From: Paragordius varius
Lineage: Eukaryota > Animalia > Nematomorpha
Reading direction: 5' to 3'
Assembly: GCA_964247055.1 (NCBI GenBank)
Contig: OZ176050.1
Location: forward strand, 5,828,001 to 5,892,000
DNA length: 64,000 bases
How positions within the stretch are numbered: position 1 is the stretch's first letter; each line of letters opens with the position of its first letter. Both the position numbers and the translations under genes were made by a program. This document shows positions 13,945-62,502 of the stretch, piece after piece. Below the pieces are notes generated by a model, which saw only the letters and a program-made list of their open reading frames with translations, was not told the origin of the DNA and made no database searches.

Positions 13945-14515
13945 TACTTCAATTCAAATTGGAGTATCTAAATACCCCAGACATTTAAGTTTATGTTTTT
14001 GAAAAAGTATTGAACGGAACGGGAACAATTAATTATGCTTCTATCCTAATAAAAATTATATAAATAAGCCGAAATATCTAAATAAAATTTGGTTTGAAAA
14101 AAAGTTACATATCAAACTACTTCGACGCCATTTTTATTTTACAACATTTTTGTTAAATATCGTGTTTATTTGATTTTAAAACTAAAATAAAAGCTAAATT
14201 TTTATTTGAATCATATCTAACATTGATAGAAACAGAAAAAGTGGTTTATTAAGTATTATTTTTAAAATTAGCTAATGCACACATGTCATGTTGACTAAAT
14301 GTTTAACTAAAGGTTTTACTTAAAAATAAGTAATATTAAGTTTTTTGAATAAACATTTTTATATATTTCAGTTTATTAATGTTATATGAGTGCAAATTTT
14401 TGCCATCGTTTCAATTCATTCCATATTATAAATTATTTAATTTTAAACAGGCCTGGGGTATCCAACTACCCCAATTTAAATCGAAGGACTGAAATGAATG
14501 TGTTGTATCCAAGTG
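13945..14515 (+). mobile_element. ~570-bp TTAA-flanked non-autonomous element (piggyBac-like MITE), left end degenerate
   Basis: Same sequence as the copies at 23886-24429, 24447-25025 and 43338-43904 (cacttcgattcaaattggggtatctaaataccccag ... aatgaatgtgttgtatccaagtg|TTAA). Confidence 0.7.
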
Positions 14516-19952: not shown

Positions 19953-22378
19953 TAAGTTTAATGGTTATCTTGGTTCAAAAAGAGAATCTTTTGAAATATG
20001 GCACGGGGGACATTCTTATGGAGAAAGAAACGAGGAAGGAATTAATCTGCTCAGATTTGCACAATCTCACAATTTGGCGATAGCGAACACGTTTTTCGAA
20101 AAAAGAGAGAGTCATCTAGTTACTTTTAAGAGCGGCATAAACAAATCTCAAATAGATTTTATACTTGTTCCAAGAGACTTATTGAAGCTTGTAATAGATT
20201 GTAAGGTGCCAAACTTAGAGGTTAGTTCGCAACATAATTTACTTATTTGTAAATTTTTCGTGAAAGAAAAGTCTAAACAAAGTGGTTCTTATTCAAAGAG
20301 ATTAAAAAGTATTAAGTGGGAGAAATTATCCGAAAAAAGGCAGGCTTTTATAAAAGAAATACGGTTATCCGAGGATGGTGGGTTAAATGGTGATTGGGAT
20401 AAAGTAAGTCAGTTAATCAAAAAGGCAGGAACTTTAGTTTGTGGATTAAAAGGCGGAAAATCTCAAGTATACAGAGAGGCTTGGCTTTACGATGAAAGAA
20501 TAATATAGATGTCACGAGAAAAAGGTAAGGCTTTTGACAAATGGAGACATACAAGGAATGATGATGATAGAGATAAGTATAAAAGTTTAAATAAGGAATT
20601 GAAAAAATTAGTCGGCCAGGTTAAGAAAGAAAAAATGAATTTATTTTATGATGAGTTAAATAGTAAGCAAGGTACAAAGTGTATAAAGTTGCGCAGCAAA
20701 GGAATAAACGCAGGATGGATTTGCCAGGTTATGCGACTGCAATAAAAGGAAAAGATGGAAGCTTGCTGTGCGAAAATGTAGAAATATTAAAAAGATGGAA
20801 AGAGTACTTTGTGAGTTTAGATGAAGGGGTAGGCGAGATATTTTTGCCAAATACAGTTGAAGCTACTGATAGACCAATAGAAGCAATTACACAAAAGGAA
20901 GTAGAATCTAATTTGTTAGAAATGCCAAACAACAAAGCTGTAGGATCGGACGACATAAATATAAATTGTTGGAAAGTGCTTGGAAATTCTGGATTAAATT
21001 TTTTGGAGCGTGTATTTAATAAAGTTGTTTCAACGTATGAAATCCCGGTTGAATGGAAGGAAAGTTTAACTGTGCCTTTATTTAAAGGAGAAGGTGATAT
21101 AAATGAATGTAGTAACTATAGAGGGATAAAACTTATGTCGCACACTATGAAATTGTTTGAAAAAATAATTGAAAAGCGAATCAGGAAAATGATATCTATA
21201 GAAGGAAATCAATTTGGTTTCATGCCAGGAAAGTCAACAGTAGATCCTATACATGCGGTTAGGAGGTTGATTGAAAAACACATTGAAAAAAAGAAAGAAT
21301 TACACGGGGTTTTGATTGATATAGAGAAGGCGTTTGACAGGATTCTTAGAGAAATTATTTGGTGGAGTCTCCGTCGTAAAAAGGTGTCAGAAAGTTATAT
21401 TAAGTTGTTACAAATAATGTACGAATCACACACCTCCAGGATTAAAATTCCACAAGGTTTATCAGAGCCCTTTTCAATAAAGCATGGAGTCTACCAAGGC
21501 TCATCACTCAGCCCCTTATTGTTTATAATTTGTATGGACAAGGTAGCCAAGGTTGTTAATGTGAGTTCAGGATGGTATTAATGTATGCAGATGACATAAT
21601 CATCTTGTCTGATTCATTAATTGAGTTAAAGCGAACGGTAAACAGATGGGTTGTTATGCTGGATCAATATGGTCTGAAAGTAAACAAAGCAAAAACCGAA
21701 CTTATTACTTTTGGGGGTCCACAACATGAAATGGTAGTTGATGATAGTTGGGTTCTGAAGGGTAAAGAAAGTTGCAAATATCTGGGAGCTATGTTAAGTG
21801 CAGATGGTTCGTTAACTGACGATATTAATTTAAGAATAAAGAGCAGCTGGGTTTGGAAGAAAATTTCGAGCGTATTATGCGATCGAAATATTGATGTTAG
21901 AGTGAAAGGTAAGATTTACAGTTCAGTTGTCCAGCCCTCAATGATGTATAATTCACAGACATGGGGTGTCAAAAAATCCGAAGAGAGACAATTTAACGTG
22001 ACTGAAATGAAAATGCTCAGAATGATGTGTGGGGTAACTAGAAAGGACAGAATCGAGAATAGATTTATTCGTGGGAGCACAGATATTAAACCAATAGTGG
22101 AAAGAATGTCAAAAAATAGGCTACGTTGGTTCGGGCACATTGAAAGGAGAGATTCTAATTATATTGCAAAAATAATAGATGGTTATATAGTTGAGGGAAA
22201 ACGAGGACGTGGGCGACCTAAAACAAAATGGATAGATACAGTAAAAAGAGAGCTAGCAGAATACGAGCTTAATGCAGAGGACGCCATAGATAGAGTTGTA
22301 TGGCGAGACAGGTTGTATAACATGACCGCTCTCACGAGTGAAAACATGTAATGTAATAATAATAATAATAATAATAAG
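19953..22378 (+). mobile_element. RTE-clade non-LTR retrotransposon, 5'-truncated and inactivated (AP endonuclease C-half + reverse transcriptase)
   Basis: EN motifs (FNGYLG, GERNEEG, LAIANTFF, SQIDFILV) and RT motifs (NYRGIKLMSHTMKLFEKII, QFGFMPGKST, DIEKAFD, GVYQGSSLSPLLF, YADD, YLGAML). RTE-type C-terminus RWFGHIERR...GKRGRGRPKTKWID. (TAA)n tail at 22356-22378. Stop at 20506-20508 and frameshifts near 20690 and 21580. No TSD found. Confidence 0.93.
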
Positions 22379-23545: not shown

Positions 23546-23885
23546 GGTATACGCAATAAATGGAGAAGTTATATTTTTAATGTTGCAGTTAGTCGGAATC
23601 GACCTTAGCAACAACAGCCCTCGAATTTGTTATTCCAAAAAATTTTCATTTGCGCATAAGAATATTGATATTTATAATATAATATGAACAAATTTTTTAA
23701 TATTTCATCATATTTTTATATTCAGATGATAAAAACAATATTTTACCATACTGCATCTTTTGATAATAATTTATTATTACGCCTGTAAGGAGGCCTTATA
23801 ATGCAAATTAGCGCCCACTTATAATTAAAAATTATATGATTATTTGGCGCTTGATATCCATCTATAATTCATGGGTGTCAATTAA

Positions 23886-25025
23886 CACTTCGATTCAAAT
23901 TGGGGTATCTAAATACCCCAGACTAAATTTGAGTTAGGATTTTTAAACTGAAGGAAACGGTCCCAATTTAAATTTATGCTTCTATCCTAATAAAAATTAT
24001 ATAAATATGCCAAAATATCTAAATAAAGTTTTGTTTTGAAAAAAATTTCATGTAAAACTACTTCGACGTCAATGTCTGAATTTAATATTAAGGGTAAAAT
24101 TAAAGCTAATTTTTTATTTAAAGTGAATCTAACATATATAAAAATAGAAAAAACGGTTTATTTTGTATTATATTTCAATTTTACCATTACACACATGTCA
24201 CGTCGACTAAATTTTTATCTTTCGGTTTTAGCTTAAAATAAGTAATATCAAGTATTTTTGAATAAAATTTTTAATATACTTCGGTTTATTAATGCTATAT
24301 AAGTGCAAAATTTTGCCATGATTTCAATTCCTTCCATATTTTTAAAGGAAATTATATTAAACATGCCTGAGGTATCTAACTACCCCAATTTGAATCGAAG
24401 AACCAAAATGAATGTGTTGTATCAAAGCGTTAAATCTTTGCATTAACACTTGGATACAACACATTCATTTTAGCCCTTCGATTCAAAATTGGGGTAGTTA
24501 AATACCCCAGGCCTGTATAAAATTAAATTCTTAAAGAAATATAGGGAAGAATTAAAATTATGGCAAAATGTTGCACCTATATAACATTATAAAACCGAAT
24601 TATATAAAAAATTCCATTCAAAAATACTTGATATTACTTATTTTAAGCTAAAACCGAAAGGTAAAAATTTAGTCAACATGACATGTGTGCAATGATAAAA
24701 TTAAAAAATATTACAAAATAAACCGCTTTTTCTATTTCTATCAATGTTAGATTTAATTTAAATAATTAATTAGCTTTAATTTCACCCTTAAAATTAAATG
24801 AATACGATATTTTGCAAATTTTGTAAAATAAAAATGGCGTCGAAGTAGTTGGACATGGAACTTTTTTTTCAATAAAAAATTTTATTTAAATATTTTGGCA
24901 TATTTATATTTTTACTAGTATATAAGCATAAATTTAAATTGGGACCGTTTCCTTCAGTAGTTTTTTAAAAATCCTAACTCAAAATTAGTCTGGGGTATTT
25001 TGATACCCCAATTTGAATAGAAGTG
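23886..25025. mobile_element. Inverted pair of TTAA-flanked piggyBac-like MITEs forming a 1.14-kb palindrome
   Basis: Copy A 23886-24429 (+) and copy B 24447-25025 (-). Each is bounded by TTAA (23882-85, 24430-33, 24443-46, 25026-29), with a 9-bp spacer atctttgca. Confidence 0.85.
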
Positions 25026-25065
25026 TTAATGGTTCACGATATTTGTTGAGCACATTTGTTTTCTC

Positions 25066-26737
25066 ATGGTTTCATTTCATCCAAAAATCGTATTACCAGG
25101 TATTAAAATTTTTGAATTTAAAAGGTGATAAAATTAGTTCGGAATCTAAATACGAACCGGGTACCGGTGCATATAAACTTGGTGAAAATATATTTTCATC
25201 CCTAATTGGTGAAATTTATTATGAAAAAAATGGACAAGTGTCTTTATATTAATCGTTTAGGAACATAAAGTTTGTGTTAAACCATTAGAAACATTTAATC
25301 CTTTGCCCAGAATGGGATCAATAGTTACTTGCAAGGTTCTGAAATTTTTAAAATTTTTAGGTCATCCATGTTTCTCAAAAATATTGTAAATGTCACATAA
25401 TTGCGATCGAAGATTATCTCCTAAAAGATACATATAAAGCGATGATACGGTATTATTTAATGTTATTTTTAGAAAAGAAGATATTGTGGAAGTTAACAGA
25501 GATGAAGTAACATTTGTATTAATTTTAGGTGGAAATATCAAATTGTTTTAGGCCAAATGATATAATATTAGCTCGCGTCGTATAAAATCATTAATTTTTA
25601 GCTAACATTAGGCGAAAATAACCATTATTTGCTCACAACTGCTGACGATTCTTTGGGTGTTTATTTAGCAAGAAGTGAATATGGTTATTATTTATTAAAT
25701 TTTCAAAATATTACCATTGTTTAATTAGGACGATACAAATTTAAATTTACGTAAAATCAAATTTCCATAAATTGCTTTAAAAACCAATAGGATTGATCGA
25801 AAATATTTAGTCTAATTCATAAAAATCAATTGAGCATTTTCTTTGAGGCTTTTTAATAGAATTTTTTAGCTATTATTATTCAAACTGGAACTCTTACTCG
25901 CTGTTATCATATTATGTCTCTAGCAAACATGTATTTGAGTGAAGCTAAAATCATCGATTAACACATATTTCTAAGCTTGGTATTGAATAAATTCAATGTG
26001 TTGATGTGATATTTTCTGTAAATAAAGGGTAGATCGCGCAAAGTTTTCCTTTTAACGCATTTTACAGCAACCGTGCTTTTTTCCCTTTCTATTTGTCAGA
26101 TAATATTCTATGTCCTTTAGTAATATGTCTGAAATATGAAAAATTTAAGGGATATTAGGTTTTTATTTTTAAAATAATGGAGTTATTAATTTTATTTTTT
26201 CATGTTATTTGCCAACCTCATTTTGTTCGTTCCCAAATCAAAAATAAAAATATTTTATTAGTGAATTTTTTCATAAAAATCAATAAAATTTCAATAAATG
26301 GTCTCATTGTTTTTTCCGATTAATTATTATATCAAGAAACATCCTACTTAAGTTTTTAATTTTAGTTAGACCAGCCATGCCCAACCCGCGCCTCGCACTT
26401 CTTTTTATAGGATCCCGCAAAAAGTTAAAAAGATAAAAATTTGGATTTAAATTAAAATTTTACAATAATTTATTATATATTTAATTGGATTTCAAACTAA
26501 ATTATTATTAATGCTCCTAGACATAAACGTTTTAAATCATTTAATATCAATCCTTTATTTTATCCAAAATCATATGGCAATATAATTACACCTATCTTAT
26601 TTATAAAAATACTTGAATCAATATTATTGAATAAAGGTGGCGTTATGTATCCCATAAGTTGGTCAGAAATGCAATGCCCTAAAACCTTTGTCCGGGAAAA
26701 ACGAAAAGTTGCCAAAATTATACGTGAAGATACTTAA
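25066..26737 (+). CDS. EXOSC1: Exosome complex component Csl4 (192 aa), split by six 22-25-nt introns and one 953-nt intron
   Basis: Exons 25066-25099, 25125-25237, 25261-25335, 25361-25449, 25473-25506, 25529-25579, 25602-25683, 26637-26737. Spliced product: MVSFHPKIVLPGDKISSESKYEPGTGAYKLGENIFSSLIGEIYYEKNGQEHKVCVKPLETFNPLPRMGSIVTCKVIHVSQKYCKCHIIAIEDYLLKDTYKAMIRKEDIVEVNRDEVEISNCFRPNDIILARVLTLGENNHYLLTTADDSLGVYLARSEYGGVMYPISWSEMQCPKTFVREKRKVAKIIREDT*. It is collinear with Csl4 (GxGxY..IFSSL.G, P..G.IVTCKV, IRKED, FRP.DI.LA.V, YLLTTA, PISW.EMQCPKT....RKVA). Confidence 0.93.
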
Positions 26738-26875
26738 CTTGTTAATATTCTGATACATTTATAATTATTTATCATTTTTATACATATACTACACATATTA
26801 ATAAATTACAGAATTTATATCACATTAAAGAGAGTATGATTATGATTTTTTTATATAAAAAATGGCATGCATATC

Positions 26876-29800
26876 CTACATATCCATATAATTTGGGTCA
26901 TCATTAGTTTCATTATCTGAAGAATTCTCAGTTATAGTTGCCTGTGTAGGGCTATATCCCATTTGCCCGCTTCTGTTAGAAATGTATGATGATGATTTAT
27001 GTATTGAAGGCATATTTCCTCCTCCTCCCATAAAAGCGTTTTTGAACATATTTTTATCAACGTCATCGGAAGGAGTTAGGGAAGAAAGGGAAGTTTTATA
27101 TTTGTGAGGTAATAAGGCCAACCCTAATTTCGATAATCTTGAGTCCCGTTTTGTTTTGGGTGATGTTAGCGTTTGTTGATTCGCAATGTTTGTCACTGAA
27201 GGAATGGTTGCGATATTTGGCACGACAGTTTCATCTGACTGGTTCCCTCCTGTTTCGGGAGAACCGTCATCCTCTTCTTCGTGAGAACTTGAGAGTCCTA
27301 ATGCATGCATTATAAAAAAATTTTTTTGAGAAAAGTCGTAATTAGAATACCGTGACGATTTATAGGCCATTTTGGTCTTTCAAATGGCTTAAGGGTATTT
27401 TTTATCTCTTGCCATGTATGAGATATTTCTTTTTTTTGTTAGTTACATTTTTAAAAATTGTATTCAATTAAATATAACTAATAAGTTGCGAAATATCATA
27501 CTTGGCAACAGAGTATAAATTCCCTTTTTAGCCATTTAAAATACCGAAATGGGAATAATAACAACTCTCATTACTGTAGAAACGCATGTTTTGGTTTTCT
27601 ATGAAAATGATCCTGAAAACTATAAAATTGGGTAAAAAAATTGTAAGTTAATACTAGTACTAATTTATTTTTGCGGTTTTTATATCTCCACCACCGCTTT
27701 GAATCATTATGCTGATAGTTTGGTGACTACACTATATTCAAAATTTTTGGCCCAAAGAAACTATAAATCTGTATAGAATTACATTTACAAGAAAAATACG
27801 GGTATTTTTTAGTCTAAAAGGTAAAATTTAAAAAAATGAATTAAATGTTATTATGGATTTTGTTTTTAGAATACTCGAATATTTTTTTATTATAATTGGA
27901 ATCATTATAAACTATTAATGGATGTTTTTCATGCATATCAATTTATTGTTATAAGGTCTAACTAATTAACCAAAAAAAATAATTTTTTTAAAAAAGCTTT
28001 TTATCAAGGCGGCCTCCAGCGTTTAGGATTGTAAAACATATTCAGAATAGAAATTGGATATTAAATGATTGAAGACAATAGACGTGAACGGAATACTTAC
28101 AACAGAAGAATAAGATACGTTAAGCCAATTTGACATGAAAGCACTCTGGTTGCCGACCACCTAAACTTTTTAGCTGTCATTAAGGCAAAAACCCTAGCAT
28201 AGCAAGCAGAAATGTGGCTAATTTATCGAATATTGAATAATTATTAATTATAAATTTACCAAATACACGAGACATTCTATCACGAGCTCTACTCATTTTT
28301 TTCTTCACAAAGTTTGTATGTTGTGTTGGCGTGATTGAGGACTTCGGTACGAATGTGGTGGTTAAAATGTCCTCACTAGTTTCATTGTCATTTGTTGACA
28401 TTGAGCTGCGGTTAGAATCGGTTATAGGTACGTCATCAATGGGCGGAATATAATTTGGATCATTATCTTTATTAAATTCTATCGGGGGGGACTCGACGAA
28501 AAATTTATTCTTCTTAGTTTTAATTTCTTCTTCTGACGGAATAATTCCAATCTTATTTTGTATTTGGTTAAATGTTGCGCTACTTGGAGCCTTATTTAAA
28601 CCTTGTTGAACGACTTTAGCCTTTGAAAAAAGCCCCTTTTTTTCTTCCAAATCAGAATTCCGCGATAGCTTAGCTTTTGCTGCACGAATTTTAAGTGGTT
28701 TTGCAATTTTCACCTAAAATAGTATAAAGAATTGCTTATAAATTGCATTATTATGTATCATAATGTAATCAAAGAAATTAAACAATACCTGTTTCTTTTT
28801 AATTTTAAGCTTTTTGGTTGTTTTGGAATCACTCAAGTCTTCGGATGAACTGGAGGAAGATGATGTTGATGATGCGGTAGTTTTTGCCTTATCATCCACA
28901 ATCCGGACAGCTTGAGATATCTGATCGGTTTGGGTGGGGAAAATGTTAACCACCTCCTCCAAATCAATACTGTAGGCCCGGAGAAGAACCTTGGGCAATT
29001 GATCATTTTCCATGACTTTTAACAATTTTTCAGATAGTTTTTTAATATCTTTGTCATAATCTGTGGGTGATACGCCTGGTCCGCCAGCTAATGCTGCTGC
29101 TTTACGAGCTTCCAAATTCCATTTCAACCTTTTTTTAATTTTTTCTGCCGCACGGTTATAACGGCTCCTAAAATAGGCTTGGAACACATTGATACACATT
29201 GAGGTGAGGGATAGCCCAATAAAAATATATACAGCTGCGATAAGCATGTTGAATGGTTTGTCTGGCACTAAATCCCCTAAACCAATTGTGCTAATGGATA
29301 TGAAGCAGAAATAGAAGGCTTGCACATAATCCCATGTTGGTTCAAAGATAGCAAAAAGGGCCCCACCCACAAAGAGGTATGCAAGGAGTAAAAACATAGC
29401 AATACTAACTGGAAGATTAAATTCGTCATCAACGGCAAAGTAAGAAAGCTTTAGGAGCTCTTTTTGCTTATCTTTATCAAGCTTAGAAAGGTCAGTTGTT
29501 GTTGGAGTTTGAGGAATTTTTTGAAACTTTTGTTTCATATTTGATTGATCGGATAAAATTTGAGCATTAGGCGTCTCTGGAATTTTGACAATTTGAGGCA
29601 TTATAATGGCTGGTTCTTCTTCAGCCACTTTAATTTTTGTAAAATTCGATACCTCCTTTTCTCCCGGAAATTCTTGTATACTTTCTGATTCCGCTTTTGG
29701 AGCTTCGGGAATATCTAAACTTTTCAGGATTTTTTCTTCCTCTGTAATCTATAAAATAAATTTAATCACAAATCACGGTTAATTAAATCACACGCTGGAA

Positions 29801-32800
29801 ATAATATTAGATATATTAAACCTAGTGTTTTAAATTTAAATGTCCGACTATGTAAAACAGAAATGTTTAAAATAAGCACCGATGTTTTTAAACAGATAAA
29901 GCGCTAACAAATATTTATTAGTTTTAAAAAAAAATTTATATTTCCACGTGGTATATAATCCAATTCGGTGGTTTCGCCCCTACATTGTAATTAAAAATTA
30001 GACAACAAATTAAGTATGGATTTTTTTAAAATTGAAATTGGCAATTATAATTTATATTATCTACCCATATAAAATTATTAATGATCAGTAACCTATTATT
30101 CATTATTATTATTAATGGATTACGACATACAATCAACCAATATACTTTGCAATGTGAAAATTAATATCATATTTTTTTGTAAACTGATAGTAAAAACAAC
30201 TTCTTAACCAATAAAATAATAAAATATACCTGGTTAGTGTTATTGGAAAAATCTGATATTTTATCACTCTCATTTTCTACTGGCTGTCCACTGTCTCGAT
30301 TGCTGTGGTTCATGTTGGATGAATCGCTTTTCGTAAATGAATCGTCAAAATTAGCCCATTTTGAAGTTGGATATATATTTTTTTTATTATCACTTAAAAT
30401 ATTGTAAACATTATTGAAAACTTTGAATTTATCCATAAACTTGGTTGACTTTTGTGTGTTATAATTATCTGTTAAGTTGGTATTCGTAGTTCCATTTTTC
30501 TGATCGAAATATATTGATGTCGCTTTAGGGACAAAATTTATAGAGTTGTCATCCTTATTGGGTTTATTTTGTGGATTTTGGTCTTCCATATCATTGCTAT
30601 TATTATTGTTGAAATTATTTACATTTATGTTTCTAGGATTAGCGTTTGTTATGTTAAAAATGTCAGAAACAGAATGCTTTGCAATTTGTGATGGAGATAT
30701 AAACTCTGGCTCTTCAAAAATTACAGGTGATATGTGTGTCACAATCTGCGGTGATATCATAATTGGTTCATTTGTCTGTGAATGGTTTGAAGGTAGAGTT
30801 ATGGACGATGGAATTGATGGTTTACGCATATTTATTTCTTGATTTTCGAAGGGGAGAGTACTTTTCTCTGGCATAAGTATTCCATTTTCCGTTGGTTGTG
30901 TATGTGTATCAGTTGTTTTATCATTATTATAATCCTTAAACCATTCTTGTTTAATTTTATTTTTCTTCCTTGTAGACCGTTTTGTCCATCGATCTTTTAC
31001 ATAAACGCCCGCTTTCGATTTTCCCAAATCCATCACTCGTTTTTCCATGATCTTTACCGCTTTAGTGTGGCGAGCTTTATCAACCGCTAGATTCATACTT
31101 TGCATAGCCTTTGTTTTTTGCATTTGTTTATAGTAGGAACTTAATTGAGCCATGGCAGTAAATTGTACTTCTCTACATTGACCAGTGTAATAGTAACGAC
31201 GAATAAATGCCCAGAAGAATTTAATTCCCCTCGTTAAAAGTTTTCCAAAATCACCTAATGCCACCAACATTAACGGAATACCAACGACAGCGTATAAAAT
31301 AGTTGCTAACCGTCCCATATTTGTTATAGGTGCAATGTTTCCATAACCTTTTATTTAAAAACAATACTGTGTACATGTCATAATGTTTATTGTATCAAAT
31401 AATTCAATTAACATTTAAGATTGGGTTAATGAAAGGCTTTAAGTTAAAATTGGGGTTAACCGCCATATAAGTGAAATGAATGCACAACCCAATATATAAT
31501 AAACAGCTGATGGAATTTATATTAATTTTATATGATTAAAACGACTAAAAATATTGGTAAAAAATAGGGAAAATAATTGGTTTATCTAACAAAATCTTTT
31601 AATTCAAATTTAACGCAATTTTTGATATCCTTGTATTAAAATTTAGGAAATACATATTGCTTTCTATTTTTTATAAAGCTATTTAACATATCTTTTTTAA
31701 TAATATTATTAGAGTAATAATTTTTATCAGATGTTAATCATATAACATTTATAAATGTTTATGTCATTTGTTGACATTATATAGCATTTCGGCCTAAAAA
31801 AATTTCGGGTTTAAAAAATCATCGACTTTATCTTAATTTGATATGTTGTAGAATTAATCAAAACAGTAATATTGTTGTATTATATCTTAAGTAATCAACT
31901 TATTAACCAAAGAAAAGCACAATACCAATAATATAATAATACATTTTTTACACTCTTAAAATACGATTATTGTCAAACGATGGTTGAAAAAAGTATATAT
32001 GAAAAAGTATTAATAAATTTATCTAAAATTGCCTGTCAAAAGGTGAACATAATATTTTTTAATTATTACTAAATATTTATTCAATTAACAGTGCGGGTCC
32101 TTCAATGGCCGGTGCATGAATCCTTATAACAATTCTTTCAAAATTATAAAAATCTCACTACGTTTATTATTATAAAAAGTCAAATCACTTTGGGAAAAAA
32201 AATTTAAAGCATTTTTAGACTAATTAAAGTATAAGAACGACTTGTGTATTTTAGAATTCAAAAAATATTATGAAAATATCATTTACTTATAATTAATAAT
32301 CACCAAATTTACTTCCATTGTGTTAAATAATTTTTTTAGAAAGATGATAATACTTTTATTAAGTAAAATTTGTCAAATGCCTGTTTTTAAAATACACAAA
32401 AGCCGTGATTGCGTGATGGTAACTTCAAACATATGCTATTCGCGATAATTTATTTTGCTCAAAAAAGCTTAAATTGCATTTTAAAATTAAATTAAGCGAG
32501 ATTTTGTGAAAGGGTATCTTTTAGTATATTGCATCATATCCAAAGCTTTGATAAAAAAGGACAATGAGACTTAATTGACTTTGCAGGTCGCGTTTTAAAC
32601 CAAAAAAATCCAGCAGCTGCATGCATATGACATTAATAAAAACTTGATTAGGTTTCATACATAATACTTTGAAAAGACAGGAACTATATAAAACTATTGA
32701 TTTATCAACTTTTTTGGAAAGATTTATCGCTAATTAATATCAATTTTACAAAGAATTAAAAGAATATTTTTGCACATATATTGTATATATTTGGGAATTC

Positions 32801-41620: not shown

Positions 41621-44492
41621 TAAGGTGACCAGACGTCCCGCTTTTGGCGGGACAGTCCCGCTTTTTCACACTTTGTCCCGCGTCCCGCTACGTTTTTGAA
41701 ATGTCCCGCTTTTTCACGATATAAAAATTTTTTTTAATACATTTAAATTTTTTATAAAAAGATTATTTTTTTATCCCTTTAATTAAATTTTTTATCATTA
41801 GTTATCTTTAAAATCTATATCAATTTTAAATGATTTTTTTTATATTAAAAATATTTATTTTTTTCGAATTCATATCATATGATTATACACTTTGCTTCCT
41901 ACTCCTACTGCCAACATTATTAAAAAGACGAATTGATACCACAAATCGGTAGTTTATATGTTTACTCCACAAAATTAAGGTAATATAATATTTTTTTATA
42001 CTAATATTAGTTTTAAAATATGAGTATAAAAAAGGTTGTAAATTCAACGATGATTAATGAAAGAATTTCCTTTTATCAAAAAGAAGAAGAATCAATCATT
42101 TGTTAAATGTTCATTATGCAAGGGGGAATTCACCCTAGCAATGGGGCAAGCATGATATTACAAAGCATATGGAAACACAGAAACATAAAAATTTTTAAGA
42201 TATGGCGGCATCATCCTACAAAATGAGCGATTTTTATTAAAAAGCTTTTGGAGAGGAAGAAAAGAATTTGGCACAAGCCGAAGGCGCTTTATCTTTTGAC
42301 ACTCGCAATCATACCTTTAGATATGTGGATTGTACCACACAGGTTATTACCTTATTCAATAAACATGTACCCGTACAAAGGCAGCCATTGTATGTAATGT
42401 CCTTTCACCACACGAATTTTCTGAAATGCAAAAGCTTTGCTGAAAATTAATTTCATATCGCTATGCTCTGATGCATCAAATCCCAAGGAAACAAAATTAT
42501 TTTCCTCTTAAATAAGATACTTTGATTCAGAAGAGTAGAAATTAAAACTTTAGATTTTTCTCTACCCGGTGAAAATTTCGACATAATATTTATTTCAATA
42601 ATGAATATTCTAGGAAAAAATAATTTAAAAGACAAAATCATCGCATATTGCGCTGACATCACCAATACGAACTTCGGTGGAAAAGCAAGGAGGGGAACAA
42701 AAAATATTTTGTTGGGTGTATGCTCATATACACAACGTATTCAAAGAGCTGCTGATTTTTAGCCCCTGGATGTGGAAAATGTAGTTGTTAAAATATAATA
42801 CTATTTTTATATATACACGGTGCGCGATGAAACACTTAAAGAATTCTGTGAAAATGCAGAAGTTCAATATCAAAAAATGCTTGGATATTGTAAAACTCGT
42901 TGATTGGCTCTTCTGCCAGCTATCGAAAGAATTTTAAAAATGTATGATCCTCTAAAATCCTATTTTTTATCACAGGACAAATGTCCTACAACTTTAACTT
43001 TTTGACAGTGATTCTCTAAAAATATGGTTAGAGTTCCTACATAATCAAGCTTCTCTCTTTCAAAATGTTATTAAATTGATAGAAGGTGCCGAAATTTCAG
43101 CATTCGAAGTAGCCAATGAAGTTATTAACCTAAAATTCCAATGTCAAGAATGGTTAGAAAATAATTTTATACCATTAACCCTCCGCAATATTATAAATAA
43201 TTTAGAAAAACAAGGCTTCATAAATCGCCATCCTGTACTGTACCATATAAAACTGTTTTATACAAACTGTAAAGATTATTTGGAAGATTGGACGGTGCGA
43301 TTCATTGAAATCGATCATTTTCATTGGATAACATTAATTGGATACAACACATTCATTTTAGTCCTTCGATTAAAATTGGGGTAGTTGGATGCCCCAGGCC
43401 TGTTTAAAATTAAATTCTTTAAAAAATATGGAATCAATTGAAATCATGGCAAAAGTTTGCACTTATAAAACATTAATAAACCGAAATATATTAAATTTTA
43501 TTTTTAAAAACACTTGATATTAATTATTTTAATGAAAAACCCAAAGGTAAAATTCACCGTGACATGTGTGCAATGGTTAATTGAAAAATAATACAAAATA
43601 AACCGCTTTTTCTATTTATAACATTGTTAGATGTAAATTAAATAAAAAATAAGCTTTAATTGTACCCTTAAAATAAAAGACAATATTTTGCAAAATTTTT
43701 GCAAAAAAAATGGCGTCGAAATAGTTTGATATGGAACTTTTTTTTCACAACGAAATTTTATCTAGATATTTTGGCTTATTTATATAATTTTTATTAGGAT
43801 AGAATTATAAATTTAAATTAAGACAATTTCCTTCAGTAGTTTTTTAAAAATAATATTTTAAATTTAGTCTGGGATATTTAGATACCCCAATTTGAATCGA
43901 AGTGTTAAAACCATAATTTGATTGGTGCGATGTTTTAAAAATTATTTTACATCAGCATCTCCCAAAATTCCCAAAAAGTAATCTTTCAGAAAAAGATTAA
44001 AAAATATATTTATAATGAAAAACTTAAATTATGGACAACAGAAAAACATACAGTGGAAAAGAAATGGTTGAAAATTTTTCATCATTATAAAACAAACTAT
44101 GTTCGATACAATAATAATTTAAAAATTGTGGATTACTATCTTTACCTAGAACGAATGCTGCTACTGAGCGCGTTCACAGTAAATTAAGTGTGGACATCGG
44201 AAAAATCAAATTTAAATGTTGAAACTTTAAAGGCCATTTTATCTGAATATAATTTGAAAAATTCTTGTGAAGATTTCTACAATATTTTAAAAAATGATGA
44301 CAATCTGCTAAAATGCATTCACTCATATAAAAAATATACCAAGGAATAAAATATTTTTTATATTTTTAATGTATTTGTGTTAAAAAAAATATTACATTAT
44401 ATTTTTTGTATAAAAATTTTTGGTTGTCCCCCCACATGCCCCCTTATCTCAGATTTGTCCCGCTTTATCCTTTAAAAAATCTGGTCACCTTA
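41621..44492 (+). mobile_element. hAT DNA transposon copy 1 (TAAGGTGACCAGA TIRs), transposase pseudogenised
   Basis: TIRs at 41621 and 44480-44492. Perfect 8-bp TSD ATCATGAT (41613-41620, 44493-44500). Subterminal GTCCCG repeats. Fragmented transposase ~42021-44350 with an N-terminal zinc finger and a C-terminal ATERV...SE/KSNLNVETLKAIL dimerisation-type motif; many stops and frameshifts. Confidence 0.93.
43338..43904 (-). mobile_element. TTAA-flanked MITE inserted into hAT copy 1
   Basis: Same family as 23886-25025, bounded by TTAA at 43334-37 and 43905-08. Absent at the homologous position of hAT copy 2 (near 46545). Confidence 0.85.
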
Positions 44493-61726: not shown

Positions 61727-62502
61727 ATGCCTGATCTTGTTTTAAAATTGGCTGAATGCAATTTGCAATTAAAACACATTATTAATGTATTTAATTTTAC
61801 ATCATAGAGGATTAATGATTTACCTGAAACACATCACATACTAAATAGTTTGAACCAGGAAGCACAACAAATAATAAAAATATATAAAGCGATTTTAGAA
61901 GTATTTTTGATTTTATAATAGGATTTGGATAATGGACAAAATTTAAAGTTACAAACAAATTATAAAAAGTAAATAATAATCGAATGTCAGGACAATTCAG
62001 GAATTACGCTTAGCTAATTTAAAAGCACAAATAAATTTTGAAAAATATAACAGAAACGCTTTGTTCACAGAAAAATCAGATAAAAATGATGATTTTTTAA
62101 TTAGGAGGTTGAATAAATTTTAAATTAAGGAAGAAGCAAAAACAGGATGAAATATTGAATAGATCTGTACATTTAACTACTGGTATGAAAGATATTACCA
62201 AATTTATTGCTAAAAGTGTCAAACATAGCGAAGATAATTTAAATTTATTAGGTATAAATCTTTTAATTGTAGCCGAGTCATCCAACAAAATTTCCAGCAC
62301 TAATAAAGAACTCAAAACTATGGACATTAATTTAATACATTCCAAAAAACTTTTGCAAAAATTCGAAAGACGGCATTTAACTGATAAATTACTTATAGGT
62401 CTGGCCATCATATTTTTCTTTCTCACAGTTTTATATATTGTTATAAAACGTGCTAGTATTTGGGGCCTTTTGAATCCCCGAAAATTGATACCCTTTTTAT
62501 AA
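61727..62502 (+). CDS. BNIP1: Vesicle transport protein SEC20/BNIP1 (~222 aa), split by five 21-22-nt introns
   Basis: Exons 61727-61786, 61808-61900, 61922-61968, 61991-62107, 62130-62251, 62273-62502 (alternative in-frame ATG at 61673). Spliced product contains ELRLANLKAQINFEK, IRRKKQKQDEILNRSVHLTTGMKDITKFIAKSVKHSEDNLNLLAESSNKISSTNKELKTM, SKKLLQKFERRHLTDKLLIGLAIIFFFLTVLYIVIKR: the Sec20 SNARE motif plus C-terminal anchor. Confidence 0.9.

Follow-up and report, generated by a model that had tools for sequence, protein, structure and literature searches.

Six probable spliceosomal introns of 22–25 nt in a nematomorph Csl4/EXOSC1 gene

The locus described here raises the question of whether an animal gene can be interrupted by six consecutive introns of only 22–25 nt and, if so, how introns of this size arose. 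To our knowledge, introns shorter than 30 nt were long thought to be absent from animals. The short-intron mode usually quoted for animals is 50–90 nt. Positions 25066–26737 of the 64-kb window (the whole stretch of DNA that was analyzed) read as a gene for the RNA exosome subunit Csl4, also known as EXOSC1, once six such segments and one much longer segment are removed. The nature of these segments was assessed through the coding frame, the identity of the product, the positions of introns in other animals, allelic variation, and public sequencing runs.

Gene structure, product, and surroundings

Scripted splicing of seven segments from 25066–26737 yielded a continuous frame of 579 nt from ATG to TAA, comprising 192 codons and the stop codon. 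All seven segments start with GT and end with AG; their lengths are 25, 23, 25, 23, 22, 22, and 953 nt, and the exons between them measure 34, 113, 75, 89, 34, 51, 82, and 101 nt. The gene is laid out as follows, with reference to the orthologous gene of the hairworm Gordionus (locus L001) and to allelic variants in public contigs, both of which are discussed below.

25066–25099 (+): exon 1, 34 nt; ATG, codons 1–11 plus 1 nt
25100–25124 (+): micro-intron 1, 25 nt, GT..AG, phase 1
25125–25237 (+): exon 2, 113 nt; N-terminal ECR1_N domain
25238–25260 (+): micro-intron 2, 23 nt, phase 0
25261–25335 (+): exon 3, 75 nt; same length in Gordionus; two allelic variants, both synonymous
25336–25360 (+): micro-intron 3, 25 nt, phase 0
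25361–25449 (+): exon 4, 89 nt; same length in Gordionus; three variants, two of them synonymous
25450–25472 (+): micro-intron 4, 23 nt, phase 2; one allelic variant
25473–25506 (+): exon 5 (micro-exon), 34 nt; Gordionus counterpart also 34 nt (L001 3498–3531)
25507–25528 (+): micro-intron 5, 22 nt, phase 0; one allelic variant
25529–25579 (+): exon 6, 51 nt; same length in Gordionus
25580–25601 (+): micro-intron 6, 22 nt, phase 0; one allelic variant
25602–25683 (+): exon 7, 82 nt; same length in Gordionus; three variants, all synonymous
25684–26636 (+): intron 7, 953 nt, GT..AG, phase 1, single-copy sequence
26637–26737 (+): exon 8, 101 nt including TAA; C-terminal ISWxEMQCPKT motif

The coordinates, lengths, and GT/AG ends of the six short introns agree with those given in a preliminary description of the locus, and none of the six lengths is a multiple of 3. 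The gap-free 192-aa Csl4 that it had proposed is reproduced by the open spliced frame, and the 34-nt exon that it placed between introns of 23 and 22 nt corresponds to exon 5. Keeping any single segment introduces a premature stop, at codons 21, 54, 92, 135, 130, 134, and 173 for introns 1–7, respectively. When alternative GT..AG pairs that leave the frame open were sought within 15 nt on either side of the boundaries, none was found for introns 1, 2, and 4, and one each was found for introns 3, 5, and 6. A 192-codon open frame has a chance of approximately 6e-8 at the local base composition, a figure that does not count in the choice of segments; because it ignores this freedom, homology and intron orthology constitute the stronger arguments. 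With these added, the earlier judgment that chance is very unlikely holds. The G+C content is approximately 27% in the window, 16% in the micro-introns, and 33.5% in the Csl4 exons. The possibility that the 953-nt intron is a recent transposon insertion was considered and rejected: it has no further copy within the window, its depth in sequencing runs equals that of the exons, and it contains no notable repeats.

To identify the product, the exons were searched one by one against Pfam and PDB, and the whole spliced protein was compared in full-length alignments. Exon 2 alone (37 aa) matched Pfam ECR1_N (PF14382) with an E value of 1.4e-5 and 25.2 bits, just below the whole-protein cut-off of 27 bits because the query was only a 37-aa piece; it also weakly matched a fungal exosome subunit chain (PDB 8pel_I, E 0.06). 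Exon 8 matched the human CSL4 chains 6d6q_I, 6h25_I, and 2nn6_I (E 1e-6, residues 166–191) across the ISWxEMQCPKT..RKVA motif. Exons 3, 4, and 7, searched singly against Pfam, gave no match. Against 1.84 billion representative proteins, searched without a profile, the best match of exon 8 was a 195-aa protein annotated as "exosome complex component CSL4-like" from Gordionus sp. m RMFG-2023 (CAK9298907.1 / XP_065318397.1), which is 90% identical over the exon (residues 163–191 of the Gordionus protein) and carries both PF14382 and PF10447; the short fragments among the matches of this search included none that was nematomorph-like.

The whole spliced product is 69% identical to this Gordionus protein over 184 aa (E 1e-96), in an alignment that begins at residue 7 of the latter and contains a single one-residue gap. 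The remaining Csl4 proteins found are at most 50% identical to the window product. In a maximum-likelihood tree of 27 Csl4 proteins, the window and Gordionus sequences formed a clade with support of 100/99, in which the window branch is approximately three times as long as the Gordionus branch. A homologue search with the Gordionus protein retrieved neither a second nematomorph Csl4 nor a transcript-derived Csl4 of the window species, and no second Csl4-like match was seen in the window. Judged from these comparisons, the product is identified as Csl4/EXOSC1, the S1-domain cap subunit of the RNA exosome, in line with the earlier assignment, which full-length identity to an annotated CSL4-like protein now substantiates. 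The protein in itself is ordinary. It resembles known Csl4/EXOSC1 proteins in its N-terminal ECR1_N domain, central S1/EXOSC1 region, and C-terminal motif, and its length of 192 aa is close to the 195 aa of the human and Gordionus proteins.

The surroundings of the gene contain repeats, retroelement sequence, and further open reading frames.

20679–22351 (+): two adjacent RVT_1-matching ORFs, probably a single retroelement gene interrupted by a frame break
24502–25030 (no strand assigned): interspersed repeat of ~530 nt, outside the Csl4 gene, ending 35 nt before its start codon
26876–27370 (-): 164-aa ORF converging on Csl4, their stop codons separated by 138 nt
28180–31318 (-): two-pore potassium (K2P) channel (Ion_trans_2), with long uninterrupted exons

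Further copies of the repeat, ~80% identical, lie at 23881–24375 (inverted), 43389–43908, and 13946–14461, so that an inverted pair of copies is situated just upstream of Csl4. Words from the repeat reach depths of 1e5–1e6 in DNA-like runs. Since the repeat ends 35 nt before the ATG, the promoter and 5' UTR of Csl4 must lie in it or at its edge. A K2P channel exon is most similar to arthropod TWK-18-like proteins (45–54% identity), and the long uninterrupted exons of this gene indicate that fragmentation into small exons does not affect all genes here. The 164-aa ORF belongs to no convincing family; its weak Endomucin-like match (E 0.002) is probably compositional. Rfam and tRNA scans of the 64-kb window found nothing.

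Intron positions shared with other animals

The Csl4 gene was compared with the loci of Gordionus (L001, GCA_954871325.2, OX940785.2), the sea urchin Diadema (L002), the mealybug Planococcus (L004), and Tribolium, and intron positions and phases were read off a five-species protein alignment. The Gordionus CSL4-like protein mapped exactly onto its locus, where the gene occupies L001 3001–5198 and contains five short introns of 39–49 nt. The Tribolium Csl4 gene is intronless. The intron lengths in the other species are as follows.

Intron 1, phase 1: window 25 nt; Gordionus 39 nt; Diadema 886 nt; Planococcus 78 nt
Intron 2, phase 0: window 23 nt; Gordionus 48 nt; Diadema 1105 nt; Planococcus 77 nt
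Intron 3, phase 0: window 25 nt; Gordionus 44 nt; Diadema 533 nt; Planococcus 79 nt
Intron 4, phase 2: window 23 nt; Gordionus 49 nt; Diadema none; Planococcus none
Intron 5, phase 0: window 22 nt; Gordionus 42 nt; Diadema none; Planococcus none
Intron 6, phase 0: window 22 nt; Gordionus 933 nt; Diadema 1478 nt; Planococcus 94 nt
Intron 7, phase 1: window 953 nt; Gordionus 455 nt; Diadema 466 nt; Planococcus 3050 nt

Positions and phases are identical between the window and Gordionus for all seven introns, and exons 3–7 are equal in length in both (75, 89, 34, 51, and 82 nt). Five of the seven positions (introns 1, 2, 3, 6, and 7) are also common to Diadema and Planococcus, the 1105-nt intron 2 of Diadema being offset by two alignment columns in a gapped region. 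Among the species compared, the positions of introns 4 and 5 are shared with Gordionus only. Because their positions and phases match those of Gordionus, and several also those of Diadema and Planococcus, the six short segments are best identified as inherited introns, four of them ancient. In the 3 kb on either side of the Gordionus gene, only the Csl4 exons matched the window.

At every shared site, the six short introns are smallest in the window, which by parsimony points to derived shrinkage, although this polarity is itself deduced from the alignment. Given that Gordionus has introns of 39–49 nt at corresponding sites, the shrinkage probably took place within or near the phylum. The size class does not appear to be fixed by position, since intron 6 measures 22 nt in the window versus 933 nt in Gordionus and intron 7 is long in both. 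Furthermore, the short introns of Gordionus are already below 50 nt, and thus a trend toward small introns may predate the split between the two lineages.

Allelic variation, sequencing runs, and alternative explanations

Three public runs of one 2024 study (X1, X2, and X8) matched the locus, and their contigs were placed on 24800–27400. These contigs run unbroken across the micro-introns, with no joint at any intron, and the runs cover exons, the long intron, and intergenic DNA to an even depth. Owing to this even depth, X1, X2, and X8 are read as genomic DNA; the kind of run is unrecorded, and were they RNA, they would represent unspliced molecules. Three DNA-like runs, representing two samples, yielded contigs that contain the segments, which are therefore not assembly errors. 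None of the words sampled from the locus occurred in the RNA-labelled runs of the species, one of which, X3, gave no contig there. Excision of the six segments from RNA would accordingly be a prediction of the gene model, drawn from genomic sequence.

The contigs of X1 and X2 represent a second allele or individual at the Csl4 locus. Seven of the nine exonic differences are synonymous in the spliced frame, compared with an expectation of 21% (binomial P = 4.6e-4). The synonymous changes in exons 3, 4, and 7 fall in three different genomic frames, and one of them affects codon 104 (CG|A), whose bases lie on either side of intron 4. Three variants lie within micro-introns 4, 5, and 6, and all leave GT, AG, and length unchanged; no indels were seen in the micro-introns in the public contigs. 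Relative to Gordionus, dN/dS is 0.11–0.19, with dS near saturation. The spliced frame is under purifying selection. Additionally, ~3% of positions across 25264–25673 and 25920–26121 differ between the window and the public contigs, a divergence suggesting either high heterozygosity or the presence of a second individual, and 3-nt indels in these contigs occur only inside the long intron (25953 and 26009).

Considering that the spliced frame carries mostly synonymous variation and that intron positions and phases are shared with Gordionus, the micro-introns are regarded as genuine and selectively maintained. Other explanations were weighed against this one. The absence of the Csl4 locus from the RNA-labelled runs, together with the commonness of GT and AG dinucleotides in any sequence, might be thought to indicate a decaying pseudogene or a chance pattern, in which the segments are small insertions or frameshifts that end in GT..AG and are never spliced. 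However, neither decay nor chance would be expected to place all seven interruptions exactly at Gordionus intron positions and phases, five of them ancient, to preserve 192 codons without an internal stop, or to yield the observed excess of synonymous differences and the low dN/dS; since the window also holds no other Csl4-like match, this explanation is very improbable. Removal at the DNA level, through ciliate-like internal eliminated sequences or programmed somatic DNA elimination, finds a parallel in the size of the segments, which resembles that of both ciliate eliminated sequences and ciliate introns. Nevertheless, their boundaries are GT..AG rather than TA, ordinary spliceosomal introns occupy orthologous positions in three other animals, and all DNA-like contigs from the two samples keep them, none having a joint at a micro-intron. 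We consider DNA-level removal scarcely credible.

A different possibility is that the introns are real but inefficiently spliced, so that a pool of transcripts with premature stops is degraded and the introns, instead of being neutral, restrain expression. Each retained intron does produce a premature stop, and PMC13644364 cites a microsporidian precedent in which extremely short introns are spliced with a median efficiency of ~25%. Against this stands the nature of the gene, an essential housekeeping gene under purifying selection, and we regard such inefficient splicing as unlikely. The reading that we prefer, with a probability of about 0.88, is that of a functional single-copy Csl4 gene, from a nematomorph distinct from Gordionus or from an animal very closely related to the nematomorphs, with seven inherited GT–AG introns, six of which have shrunk to 22–25 nt. 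The earlier proposal of a real gene with six consecutive 22–25-nt introns and one long intron is thus upheld by the orthology of the introns, the synonymous variation, and the dN/dS values.

Proposed splicing and comparison with known short introns

To characterize the motifs of such introns, the six Csl4 micro-introns were pooled with four introns of 21–22 nt from a second gene in the window, SEC20, giving ten AT-rich sequences. This gene matches Pfam PF03908 (E 7e-15 on 62155–62499), and its frame is open only when four segments are removed.

61727–62502 (+): SEC20 gene
61787–61807 (+): obligatory intron, 21 nt
61901–61921 (+): obligatory intron, 21 nt
61969–61990 (+): obligatory intron, 22 nt
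62108–62129 (+): obligatory intron, 22 nt

A fifth candidate intron in SEC20 (62252–62272) is free of stops, and its length of 21 nt is divisible by 3; from sequence alone it can be read as either spliced or retained. Among the ten pooled introns, the donor begins with GTA in seven, and conservation does not extend to positions +4 to +6. Toward the 3' end, A occupies positions -9 to -7 in five to six of the ten, and positions -6 to -3 are mostly T, followed by AG. The A patch at -9 to -7 is suggestive of a branch point, a candidate drawn from ten introns in AT-rich DNA.

In the model that we propose, the gene would have received its seven canonical GT–AG spliceosomal introns from an ancestor that it shares with Gordionus, and five would date to the bilaterian ancestor. 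Six would then have shrunk in the window lineage to a narrow minimal class of 22–25 nt, with only the last remaining long (953 nt). What would be left of each short intron is a donor reduced to GT (mostly GTA), a strongly AT-rich body (G+C 16%), and a 3' part consisting of an A-rich patch ~7–9 nt before the end, a short run of T, and AG. Ordinary U2-type splicing by intron definition, with introns near the physical minimum, is the most likely means of their removal. A transcript left unspliced would be non-productive, since each of the introns either contains a stop or disturbs the frame. The unusually compact spliceosomal geometry suggested in the preliminary description is a reasonable conjecture, as is its prediction that such genes may be falsely reported as lost.

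Across 51 genomes, a survey published in 2026 reports animal introns below 30 nt only in Dicyema and the Myxobolidae, both of which have compact genomes, and nematomorphs do not appear in its main text (PMC13644364). There, Dicyema japonicum and the myxobolids Henneguya, Thelohanellus, and Myxobolus are described as having ultra-short introns with medians of 22–27 nt, a "GTa" donor, and a weak A patch that was proposed as the branch point. The introns described here resemble those of Dicyema and the Myxobolidae in being animal GT–AG introns below 30 nt (21–25 nt here) at conserved positions between conserved exons, in their reduced "GTa" donor, weak or absent polypyrimidine tract, and weak A patch before AG, and in the adjacency of short introns to other short introns (PMC13644364). 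However, the nearest relative of the window lineage is a nematomorph, an ecdysozoan, and the genome from which the window comes is not compact, as seen in the 953-nt intron, interspersed repeats, and retroelement ORFs. The preliminary description had noted that the novelty would fall if the organism belonged to a lineage already known for such introns; its nearest relative proved to be a nematomorph rather than a dicyemid, myxozoan, or ciliate, with 69% Csl4 identity to Gordionus against at most 50% to the other proteins in a comparison that contained no dicyemid or myxozoan Csl4. The nematomorph placement also fits the two intron positions shared with Gordionus only, the arthropod TWK-18-like best matches of the neighboring K2P channel exon, and the G+C content of the window (~27%), compared with 26.9% published for the Gordionus assembly. 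A dicyemid or orthonectid origin was likewise considered and was abandoned in view of the Gordionus match and the tree. A literature search pairing hairworms with intron size found no relevant paper, and introns go unmentioned in the Gordionus genome preprint.

Flatworms offer a further comparison. Microintrons with a peak of ~37 nt in Opisthorchis, Clonorchis, Schistosoma, and Echinococcus form clusters, lie preferentially toward the 5' end of a gene, and occur alongside introns of ~3 kb in repeat-rich parasite genomes, and they are missed when the minimum intron length in annotation is set too high (PMC6530080). Similarly, in the one Csl4 gene, the first six introns are micro-introns and the last is long, although the introns here, at 21–25 nt, are ~12–15 nt below the flatworm peak and occur in another phylum (PMC6530080). 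The finding is thus one of ultra-short animal introns in a new lineage, in a flatworm-like arrangement of two size classes.

Tiny introns are also characteristic of ciliates, measuring ~25 nt in Paramecium and 15–16 nt in Stentor. Those of the window are similar in length, high AT content, GT..AG ends, and the stops that result from retention, but they differ in occurring in an animal gene with animal orthologues, under the standard genetic code, alongside long introns, and in a repeat-rich genome. A ciliate origin of the sequence was rejected, as TAA serves as a stop here and the orthologues are animal.

Beyond the gene itself, we lean toward the view that a nematomorph lineage independently evolved a discrete class of 21–25-nt introns by shrinkage without losing its kilobase introns or its repeat-rich genome, the ancestral introns that shrank here still measuring 39–49 nt or ~930 nt in Gordionus. 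This would constitute the third animal origin of introns below 30 nt, with no precedent either among Ecdysozoa or in a genome that is not compacted, and it would mean that extreme intron minimization does not require genome streamlining. In the Csl4 locus, another phylum provides a clean gene-level case in which orthology anchors each of the seven introns. The locus also offers a before-and-after comparison between sister taxa (39–49 versus 22–25 nt, and 933 versus 22 nt), through which the tempo and mechanism of intron shrinkage become testable within one phylum. Furthermore, some gene finders and completeness tools assume a minimum intron length of 30–40 nt or are unable to place exons of 34 nt. 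Such tools would break genes of this kind, which bears on claims of large-scale gene loss in hairworms; if the proposed history is true, part of the reported loss could reflect annotation that is blind to introns of this size.
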